Origin: Guillardia theta CCMP2712
Taxonomy: Eukaryota > Protista > Cryptophyta
NCBI RefSeq assembly: GCF_000315625.1
Contig: NW_005434625.1
Location: 203,726-267,725 of the forward strand
Direction of reading: 5' to 3'
DNA length: 64,000 bases
The position numbers and the translations under genes were made by a program. The notes under the pieces are model-generated. The model had not been told where the DNA came from. It did no database searches and saw only the letters and a list, made by a program, of their open reading frames with translations. Below, piece after piece: positions 1 through 9,429 of the stretch. Every line of letters begins with the position of its first letter. Position 1 is the stretch's first letter.

Positions 1-200
1 AGAAGCATGTTGGTCGTGTTGCGATGTGAGTTCCTTCTCTGAGGAGAGTGGAATTTTCGTCTTCACATCGTCACAAGGTCGACAAAGACTCAGAGGTTTA
101 CTCGCTGAGATGTAGAGGAATGAAGAACTCAGTTCTAGTCTCCCTCGTTCTCCTCCTCCTCCTCCTCCTCCCTCACTCCGAGCCCAGAAGCTCCTGGTCC

Positions 201-258
201 ATGCTCAATCGGCTCTTCCCCGCGCTTTGCGTTTCAGGGAGAAACGTCACGAGAGCAT
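201..258 (-). promoter_or_regulatory. Type II SECIS element (copy 1)
   Basis: Minus strand reads atgctc-tc-GTGAC-gtttctccctg-AAA-cgcaaagcg-cggggaagagc-CGAT-t-gagcat. This gives helix I (atgctc/gagcat), an RUGA/GA quartet, an 11-bp helix II with one C.A mismatch, unpaired AAA and an apical mini-helix cgc/gcg. It lies ~85 nt downstream of the SelO-type stop at 343-345. Confidence 0.9.
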
Positions 259-342
259 CTAGAGCTCCTCTCTCCCTACATCTTCTCGGCAGTCTCCAGC
301 TGCGCCCCAGCACATGGAGCACGTGCTGTAGCTGGAAACTGC

Positions 343-905
343 CTACGAAGATCCTGCCCACACTTTCAGCTGGAGGAAAGCAGGAGAGCATATCTTACAG
401 GTCATCGAGGCCGTGCCCAGCTTGGTGAAGGCCTCCTTGGGCGCGAGCTTGTAGTACTTGTCGACGAGGCTCTGCCGATGGCACTTGACCGTCACCGTCA
501 GGAGGCCCAAGTGGAGACGAACCTGATCCACGTTGACGCCGTATGGATCTTTGAAGAGCTCGTGGAGCTGCAGACAAGTAAGCCGGAAAAGAAGAAAAGG
601 CAAGAGGATGACGCGATGATGCTTCAGACGACTATGACCACGGCCAAAATGATAATGTAATATTGATATGATGGTGATGGTGGTGATGGTGATGATCATG
701 GGATGATGATCATGGGGGATGATGATGATGATGATTAGGAGGAGGGAGAAGGGAGGAGGAGGAGGAACTTCGGAAGCCTTGAAGATATGGAGGAGGAGGC
801 CCCCGAGGATCAGGAGGAGGAGGAACTTCGGAAACGAGGAGAAGAAGATTTGACCTCTTGCACAAGAGAGAAGTCTTCTTTTTCAGCTTGCTTGTACGCC
901 TGCAG
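343..905 (-). pseudogene. 5'-truncated duplicate of the last four SelO exons (copy 1)
   Basis: Exons AYKQAEKEDFSLVQE / LHELFKDPYGVNVDQ / SLVDKYYKLAPKEAFTKLGTASMT / U-SS* match the intact gene at 5916-6425. Homology breaks at ~905. Confidence 0.85.
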
Positions 906-1980
906 GCTTCAAGGCTTGTACGCCCTTGCCAGGCTTGTACGCCGGCCCGGTATCAGACGGACATGGCGGACTCCGAGCCTCGGCGGGGCTAGGCCTGGCC
1001 GGGCCCAAGCCCGGCGGTGCCGCCGGCCGCTGGCCTTGCTCGGAACTTGCCTTCCGAACCGCCCCGGGGACGGTCGTGACCTTCTGATCGCCAACTGGCA
1101 GATCCGTCGGAGCCAGCCGGTCCGAGCCTCGAAGTGGACTTGAACTTGTAAGGGTCAACTCACGCGGGTCAACTCGGCAGCAACAAGGCTGACCGTCATT
1201 ATTGGCTTCGTGTAAGGCCTTGTGACAGGCCACGAGGCGGGCTCGATATAGTCGCACGTGTTTTTAAAAGGAGATATACCCGTAGGGCCCGCTGAAAGGT
1301 CGTTGCTGAGGCGGGTTGCCTGGTGCCTTCGGAAATGAGTCTGAAGCGATGCATTATTGAAACTGAGTATATCCAAAAGTCGAGGTTTCGGAAAATATGT
1401 TTTTTTCGATGGATATGCAGTGGAGGGGATAAAAAAATAGTCCTCAGGATCAGGCGAGAAGTGGGGAGAGGAGGAGAGGGGAGGAGAGGAGAAGAGACAT
1501 CAGGGGAGAGAAGTGGCTCAGAAGCAGGACGTGGAGTCAGAGAAGGAGAGGACAGAAGAGGAGATGAGACATCAGGGGAGAGAAGAGAAGAGGAGAGGAG
1601 AGACGAGGAGAGGAGAGGAGAGCGACAGACTCGAGACAAAAAGGGCTTATTTCACTCCCAAGCAGTCAGGAGATACACGGAAGAGTAGGGTGCGCTTCAA
1701 GATATGTTGGAAGAAGAACACAGTAGCAGCAAGAAGCACGTCTCTTCGTCACATTGTTTGCTCAAAATCGCTCCAAGGAAGTGGTGGTTGTACTTGTTGT
1801 TAGCAGAGGAGGCAGCAATAGGGAGCATGTGTCTACAAGAGAACCATAATCGATGAGTGCCTTTTGTCCACTCACAGCCGCTGATTCTCACGGACTTTCA
1901 CTGCATAGGTTTGACTGGGCAGGCTGAAGGACCGTAACGAAAGGTCCGCCCCTGACTTGCTCAGCTTCCGACGCCCTGGC

Positions 1981-2640
1981 ATGGAGGGGCATCCGTCAGA
2001 TACCCTGACGAGTCACGAGGGTCAAGCTTCACGCGGAGAGGAGGGGCAGAGCCCTGCTCTGCCAACTTACGCCCCCCCGCGACCAGAAACACTCGTCGAT
2101 GCCATTGAGAACATCTTCTCTACAGCAGAGGATGAGGACGCCAAGTTGGGAGCTGGCGCTCATGCTGTCGACCCCTTCCTCGAGGACTTTCACTCCTCCA
2201 AGTGCACCATAGCCAGCAGAGAGTTGGAGTTGGTGCCGGCAGCCCTCACGGAGGACATGGCAGGAGACGAAGGCAGGAGCTTGCACCGATGCTCAGGCGC
2301 ACTGGTGGCGAGCATGACTCGAAAGAAGGGGGACGTGGGGGGGCACGGTAGAGCATGTTCGTCAAAGGATGCAGCAGCAGTAAGGGAGGCGAAGTCAAAG
2401 AGGGTGAGGAGGCAGTGGACGAGTGTGGAGCACGGGACGTTTGTGGAGATGTTCGAGAAGCTGCGAGACAAGAGTTTGACTGATGATCCTCCTCTTGGAC
2501 TAGGTGCTGGAGTGGCAGAAACAATCTCCCTGGTGCTGAAAACTCGCACACCAGCCCAAGTGCGTTCACATGCGCAGAAGTACTTCACGAAGATCCGCAA
2601 AGAGAAGGAGAAGAAGCAGGAGGGAGGCAACTGTGATAAT

Positions 2641-2671
<31 letters not shown>

Positions 2672-2763
2672 TGGAGGAGCAGGGGATCGAAGAGAGGGCT
2701 AAAGATAAGGGAGGGAGAGGAGGGAAGGGAGGACATCAGCGCAGTGGTCGACCGGCTGCTTGA
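1981..2763 (+). CDS. MYB-related (SHAQKYF class) transcription factor, copy 1
   Basis: RRQWTSVEHGTFVEMF...KTRTPAQVRSHAQKYF followed by an acidic/basic tail. First ATG at 1981; upstream exons not excluded. Confidence 0.88.
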
Positions 2764-2985
2764 AGGGAAGCGAGACAGTGAAGGGCAGAGAAGCATGTTG
2801 GTCGTGTTGCGATGTGAGTTCCTTCTCTGAGGAGAGTGGAATTTTCGTCTTCACATCGTCACAAGGTCGACAAAGACTCAGAGGTTTACTCGCTGAGATG
2901 TAGAGGAATGAAGAACTCAGTTCTAGTCTCCCTCGTTCTCCTCCTCCTCCTCCTCCCTTTCTCCGAGCCCAGAAGCTCCTGGTCC

Positions 2986-3043
2986 ATGCTCAATCGGCTC
3001 TTCCCCGCGCTTTGCGTTTCAGGGAGAAACGTCACGAGAGCAT
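2986..3043 (-). promoter_or_regulatory. Type II SECIS element (copy 2)
   Basis: Same sequence and fold as 201-258. Confidence 0.9.
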
Positions 3044-3127
3044 CTAGAGCTCCTCTCTCCCTACATCTTCTCGGCAGTCTCCAGCTGCGCCCCAGCACAT
3101 GGAGCACGTGCTGTAGCTGGAAACTGC

Positions 3128-3690
3128 CTACGAAGATCCTGCCCACACTTTCAGCTGGAGGAAAGCAGGAGAGCATATCTTACAGGTCATCGAGGCCGTG
3201 CCCAGCTTGGTGAAGGCCTCCTTGGGCGCGAGCTTGTAGTACTTGTCGACGAGGCTCTGCCGATGGCACTTGACCGTCACCGTCAGGAGGCCCAAGTGGA
3301 GACGAACCTGATCCACGTTGACGCCGTATGGATCTTTGAAGAGCTCGTGGAGCTGCAGACAAGTAAGCCGGAAAAGAAGAAAAGGCAAGAGGATGACGCG
3401 ATGATGCTTCAGACGACTATGACCACGGCCAAAATGATAATGTAATATTGATATGATGGTGATGGTGGTGATGGTGATGATCATGGGATGATGATCATGG
3501 GGGATGATGATGATGATGATTAGGAGGAGGGAGAAGGGAGGAGGAGGAGGAACTTCGGAAGCCTTGAAGATATGGAGGAGGAGGCCCCCGAGGATCAGGA
3601 GGAGGAGGAACTTCGGAAACGAGGAGAAGAAGATTTGACCTCTTGCACAAGAGAGAAGTCTTCTTTTTCAGCTTGCTTGTACGCCTGCAG
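3128..3690 (-). pseudogene. 5'-truncated duplicate of the last four SelO exons (copy 2)
   Basis: As 343-905, offset by 2785. Confidence 0.85.
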
Positions 3691-4765
3691 GCTTCAAGGC
3701 TTGTACGCCCTTGCCAGGCTTGTACGCCGGCCCGGTATCAGACGGACATGGCGGACTCCGAGCCTCGGCGGGGCTAGGCCTGGCCGGGCCCAAGCCCGGC
3801 GGTGCCGCCGGCCGCTGGCCTTGCTCGGAACTTGCCTTCCGAACCGCCCCGGGGACGGTCGTGACCTTCTGATCGCCAACTGGCAGATCCGTCGGAGCCA
3901 GCCGGTCCGAGCCTCGAAGTGGACTTGAACTTGTAAGGGTCAACTCACGCGGGTCAACTTGGCAGCAACAAGGCTGACCGTCATTATTGGCTTCGTGTAA
4001 GGCCTTGTGACAGGCCACGAGGCGGGCTCGATATAGTCGCACGTGTTTTTAAAAGGAGATATACCCGTAGGGCCCGCTGAAAGGTCGTTGCTGAGGCGGG
4101 TTGCCTGGTGCCTTCGGAAATGAGTCTGAAGCGATGCATTATTGAAACTGAGTATATCCAAAAGTCGAGGTTTCGGAAAATATGTTTTTTTCGATGGATA
4201 TGCAGTGGAGGGGATAAAAAAATAGTCCTCAGGATCAGGCGAGAAGTGGGGAGAGGAGGAGAGGGGAGGAGAGGAGAAGAGACATCAGGGGAGAGAAGTG
4301 GCTCAGAAGCAGGACGTGGAGTCAGAGAAGGAGAGGACAGAAGAGGAGATGAGACATCAGGGGAGAGAAGAGAAGAGGAGAGGAGAGACGAGGAGAGGAG
4401 AGGAGAGCGACAGACTCGAGACAAAAAGGGCTTATTTCACTCCCAAGCAGTCAGGAGATACACGGAAGAGTAGGGTGCGCTTCAAGATATGTTGGAAGAA
4501 GAACACAGTAGCAGCAAGAAGCACGTCTCTTCGTCACATTGTTTGCTCAAAATCGCTCCAAGGAAGTGGTGGTTGTACTTGTTGTTAGCAGAGGAGGCAG
4601 CAATAGGGAGCATGTGTCTACAAGAGAACCATAATCGATGAGTGCCTTTTGTCCACTCACAGCCGCTGATTCTCACGGACTTTCACTGCATAGGTTTGAC
4701 TGGGCAGGCTGAAGGACCGTAACGAAAGGTCCGCCCCTGACTTGCTCAGCTTCCGACGCCCTGGC

Positions 4766-5551
4766 ATGGAGGGGCATCCGTCAGATACCCTGACGAGTCA
4801 CGAGGGTCAAGCTTCACGCGGAGAGGAGGGGCAGAGCCCTGCTCTGCCAACTTACGCCCCCCCGCGACCAGAAACACTCGTCGATGCCATTGAGAACATC
4901 TTCTCTACAGCAGAGGATGAGGACGCCAAGTTGGGAGCTGGCGCTCATGCTGTCGACCCCTTCCTCGAGGACTTTCACTCCTCCAAGTGCACCATAGCCA
5001 GCAGAGAGTTGGAGTTGGTGCCGGCAGCCCTCACGGAGGACATGGCAGGAGACGAAGGCAGGAGCTTGCACCGATGCTCAGGCGCACTGGTGGCGAGCAT
5101 GACTCGAAAGAAGGGGGACGTGGGGGGGCACGGTAGAGCATGTTCGTCAAAGGATGCAGCAGCAGTAAGGGAGGCGAAGTCAAAGAGGGTGAGGAGGCAG
5201 TGGACGAGTGTGGAGCACGGGACGTTTGTGGAGATGTTCGAGAAGCTGCGAGACAAGAGTTTGACTGATGATCCTCCTCTTGGACTAGGTGCTGGAGTGG
5301 CAGAAACAATCTCCCTGGTGCTGAAAACTCGCACACCAGCCCAAGTGCGTTCACATGCGCAGAAGTACTTCACGAAGATCCGCAAAGAGAAGGAGAAGAA
5401 GCAGAAGGGAGGCAACTGTAATGACGACGACGACGACGACGATGACGACGACGACGACGAGATGGAGGAGGAGGGGATCGACGAGAGGATAGATAAGGGA
5501 GGGAGAGGAGGGAAGGGAGGACATCAGCGCAGTGGTCGACCGGCTGCTTGA
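4766..5551 (+). CDS. MYB-related (SHAQKYF class) transcription factor, copy 2
   Basis: Protein matches copy 1 except in the poly-Asp/C-terminal tail. Confidence 0.88.
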   Translation: MEGHPSDTLTSHEGQASRGEEGQSPALPTYAPPRPETLVDAIENIFSTAEDEDAKLGAGAHAVDPFLEDFHSSKCTIASRELELVPAALTEDMAGDEGRSLHRCSGALVASMTRKKGDVGGHGRACSSKDAAAVREAKSKRVRRQWTSVEHGTFVEMFEKLRDKSLTDDPPLGLGAGVAETISLVLKTRTPAQVRSHAQKYFTKIRKEKEKKQKGGNCNDDDDDDDDDDDDEMEEEGIDERIDKGGRGGKGGHQRSGRPAA

Positions 5552-5732
5552 AGGGAAGCGAGACAGTGAAGGGCAGAGAAGCATGTTGGTCGTGTTGCGA
5601 TGTGAGTTCCTTCTCTGAGGAGAGTGGAATTTTCGTCTTCACATCGTCACAAGGTCGACAAAGACTCAGAGGTTTACTCGCTGAGATGTAGAGGGATGAA
5701 GAACTCAGGTCTAGTCTCCCTCGTTCTCCTCC

Positions 5733-5854
5733 NNNNNNNNNNNNNNNNNNNNNNNNNNNNNNNNNNNNNNNNNNNNNNNNNNNNNNNNNNNNNNNNNNNN
5801 NNNNNNNNNNNNNNNNNNNNNNNNNNNNNNNNNNNNNNNNNNNNNNNNNNNNNN
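5733..5854. other. Assembly gap (122 N) covering the expected native SECIS position (~5774-5831)
   Basis: N run; expected position inferred from the 2788-bp offset. Confidence 0.95.
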
Positions 5855-5915
5855 CTTCTCGGCAGGCTCAAGCTGCGCCCCAGCACATGGAGCACGTGCT
5901 GTAGCTGGAAACTGC

Positions 5916-8731
5916 CTACGAAGATCCTGCCCACACTTTCAGCTGGAGGAAAGCAGGAGAGCATATCTTACAGGTCATCGAGGCCGTGCCCAGCTTGGTG
6001 AAGGCCTCCTTGGGCGCGAGCTTGTAGTACTTGTCGACGAGGCTCTGCCGATGGCACTTGACCGTCACCGTCAGGAGGCCCAAGTGGAGACGAACCTGAT
6101 CCACGTTGACGCCGTATGGATCTTTGAAGAGCTCGTGGAGCTGCAGACAAGTAAGCCGGAAAAGAAGAAAAGGCAAGAGGATGACGCGATGATGCTTCAG
6201 ACGACTATGACCACGGCCAAAATGATAATGTAATATTGATATGGTGATGATGCTGATGGTGATGGTTGATTGTTATGGTGATGGAAGGTGATGATGGTGA
6301 TGATCATGGGGCGATGATGATGAGGAGGAGGGAGGAGGAGGGAGGAGGGAGGAGGAAGGAGGAGGAGAAGAAGATTTGACCTCTTGCACAAGAGAGAAGT
6401 CTTCTTTTTCAGCTTGCTTGTACGCCTGCAGGTGCCATGAGCTCGTCGCGCGCTAACAGTTGACCTACCTCAACCAACATCCACTCACGTGGGATGAACA
6501 TGGGGCTCTCTGGTGAAACATCAGCAAGTCTCCTCCTCACCCTCTCCCCCCCCCCTACTCCCCCCACCCCCCTAGTCTCTCTCTCCTAATCTCACCGCTT
6601 CTTATCTGTTCTGCTGCCTGCTGCGCGGTGGTTCCCTCGTTGGCTAGCTCGTTCCTGTCACTTGAGTCACGAGCTGCAGGCTCCCTCGCCTTCTTCACCT
6701 CCAGCGCTTGAGGAACTTGATCCAGCTCTCCTTCAGCTCGTCTACAGCAGGGTGAGAAGCTTTCCACCTCCAGCCTTGTGCACCCGTCAGCGGCTCGTAG
6801 AAACCAGCCAGCAGGGGCGCCAGGAGCTTTTCGTCCTCTGCCGACAAGTCACGTGACTTCATTGGAGCAGCCTCGAGGCTCGACCTGCCCCGTCCTCGAC
6901 CAGCACCACCTCTGCAAGCTGACGGAGGTGTGAGACGGAGTGATGGCAGGTAAGAGAGGAGAGTCACCTGTCTCCAGATGATGGTCCAGTCGCCGCACGA
7001 GCGGCGGAGCAAGTCCTCATAGGTGTTGAACAGATCCTGAGCGACTGCAAGAGGTTTCAGAGCTCCGCAAGCGCTTCCGGGAGTTCTCACGTTCATCGTT
7101 CTGCTGCCTCAGTCCAAACTTCCTCCTCCACACGTCTTGGACAGATGAAAGAACAGAGCTGCTCCCAACCGCGTCAACCTCATTTTTGATGTACACACTC
7201 GCATACCGCTTCGCGTATGTCAACACCTCACGCACGTCGTCCAGCCCTCCGCTCAGGACGGGCGAGAGCGACACAGCGAACTAGAACAAGGTGAGGGAGG
7301 AGGAGGAGAGTGAGGCAAATACCGTCTGAGACGAGGAATGCGGCAGAGAGCAACAAAAGGCAGACACCAAGGTCAGCACACTGTGAGGCAAGTTCTTCTC
7401 CCGCGCACCTGCAAGTTGGCGAGGATCGCGTTGGGCTGGTTCATGAAGGCATAGTGATCTCCGCTGCCAACCCACTTGGCAAAGAGAGGGTCATAGCAGT
7501 CGATAAAGCCGAAGGGCCCGTAGTCCATCGTCCTCCCGCCCACCAGGCAGTTGTCCGCATTGAAGTTGCCCTGACAGAAACCAACACGAAGCCAGTCGGC
7601 CACCAGCCGTCCGAACCTGTCAGCAGCTGCTCGCAACATCTCCTTGGCTCGGGCGGGGAGAGGAGCGTCGGGCGAGACGTCAGGATACTCTCTGAACAAG
7701 GCATGCGAGATGAGCTGCTCAAGCTGACGCAGCCCGTCAGGGGTCGGAGCGACCTCCGCCCTCCTGGCGAAGAGGTCGAGATGCCCGACCCTCAAGAAGC
7801 TGGGGGATACGCGGGTTGTGATGGCGCAGGACTCGCGGATCATCACGTCCGGCTCAGCTAGCTTCAACGCGATCTCCCGCATGTACATCTTCCTCTCGTG
7901 GGCTGGTAGGCTCGCTAGCCTCGGATGATCTTCTGACGGCATCCGATCCTCTCCGCTGTACCAGGGACGGCGAGCTTTCTCAGTCTCGCTCTTGATGAGG
8001 CAGAGGGCGCGGGTAGTGGGGACGCGCAGATGGAACATGGCCTCTGAAGCAAGGAACTCCCTGATGGACGACCGGAGCACTGCCCGGCCGTCGCCTCCCC
8101 GACAGAAAGGAGTAGTCCCCGACCCCTTCATCTGCAGCTCCCAGCGCTCTCCGTTCACCACCACCTCCCCGATACTGATCGCTCGCCCGTCTCCGTATCC
8201 GTTGCCCGTGCCAAAGGGGCAGTTGTGGGTATACCGATTCCCCATGATGGAAAGAGCGTACGGGGTACACCACGACTCGAGCTCCGGGACCAGCGACTGC
8301 TCTCCGCTGAAGAACCTGACGAACTGATCCGACTGCACAACCTCCTCGCTCAGCCCCAAGTGCTTGCTCATGTCCTCTGAGTGGATGATCAGCTTGGGAT
8401 CCGGCAGAGGCGTCGGCAGGACCCTAACGTAATGCCCTGACTTGACCTCTCGAGATTTCCTGTTGGGAGCATGGAGCTCTGTCTCTGGATCTGCTTCTAA
8501 CTGCTCCAACCACGAGTGGCTCGCACACTCCCCCAACTTTGCGAGAGTCTCCATGCCGGGCAAAGTCGCGAAGTTCCTCGCGCTGCACCTGAGGTCAAGT
8601 GCGTTTCTGGGTGTGCCCGCGGTTCTGAGAAGCAACCTGCTGCTGGAGAAACAAGCGCTTCGAGAAAGATGCCCGAAGATGAGAGCAGATAAGAGATTAC
8701 AACACCTTGACGAGAGAAGTCGGTGTTGCAT
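5916..8731 (-). CDS. SELENOO: Selenoprotein O (YdiU/UPF0061 pseudokinase-fold AMPylase), multi-exon, C-terminal Sec, probable mitochondrial presequence
   Basis: Motifs YGDGRA, ELQMKGSGTTPFCRGGDGRAVLRSSIREFLASEAM, FLRVGH, GFCQGNFNADN and MDYGPFGF, then WRRKFGL, DWTIIWRQ and SPMFIPREWMLVE. Terminal exons 6509-6469, 6425-6381, 6140-6096, 6044-5972 and 5926-5916 join to end ...GTASMT-U-SS*. N-terminus is R/S/L-rich. Confidence 0.93.
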
Positions 8732-9429
8732 CCGAGATTCACCAACAGCCCTAGACGAAAGGAAAAGTTGTGGCGAACGAGTCTACTCTCCTAAAGCCCA
8801 ACAAACATCGTGGCGATGAGGCTTGGAAGATGATATTCGCTAACCTACGTAGAAGAACTGTCAGTCATCGAGAAGACCATCATGATGGTCTCTTCTACTT
8901 CTTGTTCAGGTCTGGGTCGACATCCTACCATTGCAGGGTTCCTTCTTCCTCCTTAAAATCCTCGATGTTCTGCACCTAGACAACCATGGCATGGACTTGA
9001 TGCAGGAGTCCTGCTCCTCCTGCTCCTCCTGCTCCTCCTGACAACTCTATCTCCTCATCGCCCTCCATCGCCGCCGCCTCGTTCTTCTCTCTGATCTTCG
9101 ACTGCCATCGTGCATTTATGCATGGAACTTCGTCCATTGTGCTACCCCTCCTTGGGACATCCATCAGACCCGTACCTCTACCACCCCACCCCCTCGTTTG
9201 CGGGGGTTGGGTCTTTGAATGTTGCACAAAGACTGTCACTGACCTCCGAGGGCCCGGGCCCGGTGCCGGCCTTGACTGACCTTTGATGGGAACAAGTCTG
9301 CCTCAGATAAGTATGTTAGGAAGACGTCAAGACATCAATCATAATCTAGCGATTTCCTCCAATCCAAATTGGCGGCTGCCTTGAACATCCGGATTTAGCA
9401 ATGCTGGTGCGGTAGGGAGGGGAGGGAAC

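Follow-up and report, generated by a model that had tools for sequence, protein, structure and literature searches.

The stretch of DNA analysed here (the window) comprises 64,000 nucleotides from Guillardia theta CCMP2712 (contig NW_005434625.1, positions 203,726 to 267,725). Its minus strand carries a gene for selenoprotein O (SelO, SELENOO). The open reading frame 7373–8731(-) matched the SelO domain PF02696 with an E-value of 3.3e-61 and 207.9 bits against a Pfam cut-off of 22.8. Its exact database match is GUITHDRAFT_95515 of G. theta CCMP2712, which bears the UniRef name Selenoprotein O, and the homologue search returned 7980 SelO homologues at E <= 1e-30. The exon map was obtained by exact spliced alignment of a polyadenylated transcript contig, L005 (JGI sample 3300017164), to the window. 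The coding sequence runs from the ATG at 8731 to the TAG at 5916 and contains 649 codons, including a selenocysteine codon (Sec647). Introns 1 to 13 measure 83, 42, 48, 46, 49, 47, 42, 44, 86, 43, 240, 51 and 45 nt respectively. All features are summarized in Table 1.

Table 1. Coordinates of the SelO gene, the tandem repeat and associated elements in the window.
Feature	Position	Strand	Description
Tandem repeat of 2788 bp, two units	1–5732	.	1–2944 equals 2789–5732 at 99.2%; third partial unit to ~6432
Myb-like ORFs	1954–2763, 4742–5551	+	one per repeat unit
SECIS, tandem copy 1	about 201–258	-	alignment of three copies; sequence same as copy 2
45-nt intron, copy 1	354–398	-	identical sequence
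SECIS, type II, tandem copy 2	2986–3043	-	Rfam SECIS_1 full-length model match, 20 bits, E 0.19
45-nt intron, copy 2	about 3139–3183	-	identical sequence; reference for reads
SelO (SELENOO) transcription unit	5657–8846	-	14 exons, 13 introns; PF02696 and spliced alignment of L005
SelO exons 1–7	8846–7409, 7325–7323, 7280–7207, 7158–7091, 7044–6968, 6918–6885, 6837–6784	-	L005 alignment
SelO exons 8–13	6741–6699, 6654–6596, 6509–6469, 6425–6381, 6140–6096, 6044–5972	-	L005 alignment
SelO exon 14	5926 to poly(A) site ~5657	-	L005 alignment; L005 poly(A) tail begins at the equivalent of 5657
Intron 12	6045–6095	-	51 nt, phase 0, length a multiple of three, stop-free
Exon 13	5972–6044	-	ends ...GGC ACG GCC TCG ATG ACC T; last T (5972) is base 1 of the Sec codon
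Intron 13	5927–5971	-	45 nt, phase 1, GTAAGA...GGGCAG, inside the Sec codon
Exon 14, start	5916–5926	-	GA (completes TGA, Sec), TCT TCG (Ser Ser), TAG stop at 5918–5916
Assembly gap, 122 N, in SelO 3'UTR	5733–5854	.	begins 61 nt after the stop; hides the copy 3 SECIS

The second exon is a microexon of 3 nt (ACG, Thr442; 7323–7325, minus strand), flanked by ...ctcag and gtatttg.... It was found both in L005 and in the MMETSP protein P0121 (ANLQTFAV), and is missing from the GenBank model. At the other end of the gene, only ~105 nt separate the poly(A) site (~5657) from the end of the convergent Myb-like ORF (stop at 5551).

The last intron interrupts the Sec codon. On the minus strand, the segment 5916–5972 reads ...TCG ATG ACC T at the end of exon 13, then the intron gtaagatatgctctcctgctttcctccagctgaaagtgtgggcag, then GA TCT TCG TAG. 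When read through, this intron is a multiple of three in length and free of stops, and gives C-KICSPAFLQLKVWAG. The unspliced frame is thus open: the translation of ORF 5916–6176(-) ends with ...GTASMTCKICSPAFLQLKVWAGSS at the same stop as the spliced form, and the C-terminal peptide of an intron-retained form would be ...SMTCKICSPAFLQLKVWAGSS. A sequence-only reading of this DNA had proposed exactly this intron/exon layout and had pointed to intron 12 as another stop-free intron of the same kind; the minus-strand sequence agrees with the former in every position, and the exon map with the latter.

In order to evaluate splicing at this site, RNA contigs were placed on the gap-free tandem copy 2 (window 2799–3398, which is copy 3 minus 2788), exons 11–14 and their introns being identical between copies. 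Contigs from all three RNA studies (X1, X7 and X11) contained an exact 45-nt skip at about 3138–3183, equivalent to 5927–5971. The skip reads CT..AC on the plus strand, that is GT..AG on the minus strand. The word depth of the spliced contigs was 466 in X1, 78 in X7 (contig of 2282 nt) and 2541 in X11 (contig of 1983 nt). The same contigs also skip the 51 nt of intron 12 (3257–3307, equivalent to 6045–6095) with no further differences, and the intron bins had zero depth in the placement of all three. The polyadenylated transcript L005 reads ...GGC ACG GCC TCG ATG ACC TGA TCT TCG TAG. At the protein level, MMETSP protein P0121 (646 aa) and JGI protein P0124 both terminate with ...KLGTASMT, and in the sister cryptophyte Hanusia phi the SelO deduced from a transcript (P0125) terminates with ...KIGTASMT. 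Together, these results show that the TGA is absent from the DNA and present only in the spliced mRNA, which is the assembled form in every RNA and protein set covered.

The in-frame UGA of the mature mRNA aligns with a Sec or a Cys of the homologues. Nearly all of the best 120 SelO homologues stop at ...[AG]-x-M-[ST], which corresponds to the point where a gene caller would take a Sec UGA for a stop. By contrast, the Cys forms P0061 and P0109 continue further and end with ...GGTAFMSCSS, their C-S-S aligning exactly at the UGA-Ser-Ser position. Moreover, a TGA followed by Ser-Ser-stop is found in eight loci of diverse lineages (L001, L005, L036, L039, L040, L041, L042 and L043), in which the Ser codons vary between TCC, TCT, TCG, TCA and AGC. 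Ser-Ser-stop is hence kept with synonymous codons, which points to selection at the protein level and to translation beyond the UGA. The conserved tail is ...M-[ST]-[U/C]-S-S-stop, and the spliced mRNA of G. theta fits it (SMT-UGA-SS-stop). The U/C-SS homology and the SECIS element described below, taken with the spliced contigs of the three RNA studies, L005 and the proteins ending in ...SMT, bear out the proposal that splicing creates the Sec codon.

A putative type II SECIS element is readable in the 3'UTR of tandem copies 1 and 2. It has a GUGA core, an AAA apical bulge, a 3' GA and an apical mini-stem CGC/GCG. The element of L005 is identical to that of copy 2; its core lies at L005 2168–2171, 102 nt after the UGA. 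With 20 bits, the copy 2 element remains below the Rfam gathering score of 35 for SECIS_1. For calibration, the canonical AUGA...AAA...UGA SECIS of a homologue (L036) was scored with the same model and obtained just 17.6 bits, which indicates that the Rfam model under-scores algal SECIS. The SECIS claimed earlier downstream of the split codon can therefore be read in copies 1 and 2 and in L005, but not at the 5916–5972 locus itself, where the corresponding segment is inside the N gap. For this reason the Rfam scan of 4000–7000 returned no SECIS match. When four whole transcripts were scanned with Rfam at E <= 1, again no SECIS was reported, the model being weak on algal elements. A SelO homologue with 66% identity (L039) has in its 3'UTR, at ~1930–1990, a SECIS-like element GUGA...AAAA...UGA that is unreported by SECIS_1; GUGA cores may be common in this SelO group. 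A hairpin at ~5610–5650 (GATGTGA...TCACATC) was considered as a SECIS and rejected, being located past the poly(A) site and lacking a UGA/GA quartet.

We read the locus, with a probability of about 0.85, as the 3' end of a nuclear SELENOO gene with a constitutive intron in its Sec codon, producing a SECIS-bearing mRNA in which the UGA would most likely be decoded as Sec. Removal of the constitutive 45-nt phase-1 intron yields an mRNA reading ...ACC UGA UCU UCG UAG, with the junction after the first U of UGA. The type II GUGA SECIS located 102 nt downstream would then allow this UGA to be read as Sec. The predicted product is a SelO (protein adenylyltransferase) of 649 residues ending with ...GTASMT-U-SS, like other eukaryotic SelO selenoproteins. 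Splicing, the mRNA sequence and the conserved U/C-SS-stop are direct observations; Sec insertion and the function of the SECIS we infer from sequence. If the splice-made UGA were instead a plain stop, the protein would end at ...GTASMT and the SelO of G. theta would be no selenoprotein. The SECIS score under the Rfam gathering threshold and the database proteins, all called as ending at SMT, could be taken that way. Against it stand the Ser-Ser-stop kept after the TGA in the eight loci despite synonymous changes, the Cys forms that place C-S-S at exactly the same site, and a SECIS that has all core features and outscores the canonical element of a homologue. In addition, a selenoproteome of 14 selenoproteins in 12 families has been reported for G. 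theta (PMC7539508). A plain stop is thus improbable, and decoding of the G. theta SelO UGA as Sec is most likely on this comparative evidence.

A different concern is raised by the tandem repeat in which the 3' end of the gene is embedded. Each repeat unit contains a Myb-like ORF on the plus strand plus SelO exons 11–14, the 3'UTR and the SECIS, and the repeat boundary falls in SelO intron 10, 7 nt before exon 11. In the alignment, exons 11–14 and introns 11–13 are identical in all three copies. The exon set at 5916–5972 might nevertheless not be the one transcribed as assembled, either because the array and its gap are mis-assembled or because the exons and 3'UTR of another copy are used. In the 3'UTR, all RNA contigs and L005 are identical to copy 2 (0 differences). 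Relative to copy 1, the transcripts show two mismatches and one indel. Relative to copy 3 they differ at 5870, 5866, 5709 and 5695, four sites at which copy 3 stands apart from copies 1 and 2 as well as from every transcript contig. The GenBank model, moreover, continues from exon 11 into a 3'UTR that is of the copy 1/2 type. On the other hand, none of the four sites is more than ~40 nt from an edge of the gap, where poor base quality is to be expected, and a transcript using copy 2 would have to splice out an intron of ~2.8 kb, the introns of this gene measuring 42–240 nt. The four-site mismatch is most simply explained by low-quality bases or a mis-assembled array. The assembly at copy 3 and the gap is uncertain, and we regard a departure from the assembled arrangement as unlikely, though the most serious of the alternatives weighed here. 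Since the copies share the same exons and introns, the conclusion on the split codon is independent of the copy used.

The sequence-only reading had gone further and suggested that retention of the 45-nt intron is regulated, for example by selenium limitation, so that one gene would make a Sec or a Cys enzyme. The retained form would carry a Cys at the Sec position followed by a 15-residue C-terminal insert, and would not need the Sec machinery. If true, such a Sec/Cys switch, operated at the level of splicing in one gene, would matter for coping with selenium scarcity. Several observations are compatible with it: the unspliced frame is open to the same stop, a Cys codon occupies the Sec position, and natural Cys-form SelO homologues exist (P0061, P0109, FMSCSS ends). 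Background unspliced RNA is seen in the libraries, as an X1 contig across intron 11 and as a Hanusia transcript (P0122) that reads into intron 1. There is also a precedent of a similar kind in the Ciona SPS gene, whose alternative exons give a Sec and a Gly isoform (PMC4561486).

These coding features are, however, at the level expected by chance. Among the 13 introns of the SelO gene, six have a length that is a multiple of three, and four of the 13 are in addition stop-free in frame (7206–7159, 6783–6742, 6095–6045 and 5971–5927). Shuffling intron 13 left this frame free of stops in 63% of cases, compared with 68% of random 45-nt introns of the gene's intron composition. The Cys codon is forced by the T preceding the GT of the donor, and the shared stop by the intron length being a multiple of three. 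A second Cys at +3 would occur by chance in ~3.5% of cases and was spotted post hoc. As for the proposed new CxxC, it has no homologous basis, the algal SelO family being without a Cys at -3. The donor GTAAGA, which by eye looks closest to consensus among the 8-nt donor strings of the gene, argues for efficient constitutive splicing. The TGA is unsplit in four genomic homologues, so that the arrangement is not conserved outside the lineage. Being in the last exon and preceding the stop by three codons, the UGA is not expected to trigger nonsense-mediated decay; there is consequently no obvious need for a rescue isoform.

Searches for the retained form gave the same picture. No contig of X1, X7 or X11 retained intron 13, with the reservation that contigs drop rare variants, so that low-level retention may have escaped. 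No retained protein was present in the five-member protein cluster or among the matches to the C-terminal half of the spliced form, and the read-through ORF 5916–6176, used as a query for related proteins, yielded no candidates. The raw-read run X23 (60-nt reads) reached a depth of ~9 on the 3'UTR and 0–1 over the last coding exons, and contained no junction reads. Regulated retention leading to a functional Cys isoform finds no support in these results, and we consider it the least probable of the readings: everything that speaks for a Sec/Cys switch here amounts to features common to a quarter to a third of the gene's introns. That intron 13 is a multiple of three, stop-free and Cys-starting when unspliced is coincidental. 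The proposal thus stands for the splice-built Sec codon and is unsupported for the regulated Cys isoform, and its own caveat that the read-through may be chance (four of 13 introns, 63–68% of shuffles, T+GT) was the better reading.

In study X1, a contig of 17.7x extends unspliced into the 240-nt intron 11 (3325–3398, equivalent to 6113–6186) beside the 466x spliced contig. That library therefore contains a few per cent of unspliced RNA, or else of DNA.

Comparison with known relatives places the gene among ordinary SelO orthologues. Like vertebrate SELENOO, it has PF02696, a predicted antepenultimate Sec followed by Ser-Ser-stop and a predicted SECIS in the 3'UTR. In human SelO, Cys664-x-x-Sec667 is found close to the C-terminus and is followed by Ser-Ser (PMC3994087), whereas G. 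theta has a Ser at -3 (S-M-T-U) and hence no CxxU. It also differs from the vertebrate gene by its intron-interrupted Sec codon and by a GUGA SECIS core with apical AAA. The resemblance to algal and protist SelO is represented by the marine eukaryote contigs L001–L004 and by L041, L042 and L043, with 60–66% identity for the nearest, and their C-terminus ...G-T-A-F-M-[ST]-U-S-S-stop is of the type shared by the G. theta tail. Unlike in G. theta, the TGA is contiguous in the DNA of all four genomic homologues, namely an intronless marine contig (L001), an ENA contig (L041), Pelagophyceae sp. CCMP2097 (L042) and a 20-kb multi-exon gene of Effrenium voratum (L043). The TGA is therefore split only in G. 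theta among the genomic loci compared, Hanusia phi being known by transcript alone.

As the retention hypothesis would have it for SelO, the Ciona SPS-ae gene makes a Sec or a non-Sec isoform by alternative RNA processing, in its case Sec and Gly isoforms via alternative 5' exons (Mariotti et al. 2015, PMC4561486). For both Ciona isoforms there is cDNA evidence, conservation among ascidians and a functional test, and they arise from alternative exons without intron retention. The second isoform of G. theta SelO is, by contrast, hypothetical, none having been observed.

A metagenome scan for split-codon orthologues (GTAFM[ST], then T/GTRAG) gave 0 matches, a blank that is not evidence of absence. 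A scan of metagenomes with the exact exon 13 end produced 29 matches, all of them chance occurrences in GC-rich bacterial contigs, and was discarded. A literature search for an intron-split Sec codon found no relevant paper, which is no proof of novelty. By our own rough estimate, an intron falls in any given codon with a frequency of ~1% (13 introns in ~650 codons), so split Sec codons must occur among intron-rich selenoprotein genes. The G. theta gene is an ordinary SELENOO orthologue whose sole oddity is the constitutive intron inside the Sec codon, and it is mainly an annotation curiosity.

Its practical value lies in annotation. The C-terminus of the GenBank/UniProt model GUITHDRAFT_95515 (L1J3R7, P0001) is wrong, as the model passes from ...SLVQE straight into 3'UTR sequence (AVSSYSTCSMCWGAAGDCREDVGREEL). 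The model is without exons 12 and 13 and the coding start of exon 14, so that the last 39 residues and the Sec are missing. As the Sec codon is absent from the genomic DNA, it is invisible to searches for an in-frame TGA. The locus thus offers a clean, transcript-verified case for selenoprotein gene finders applied to intron-rich protists.

A 2656-nt genomic contig from the metagenome ENA ERZ930064 (L006) was 96.7% identical to window 6761–9408. It ends at 6761, short of the split codon, and its identity indicates that a close Guillardia relative is present in that environmental sample.
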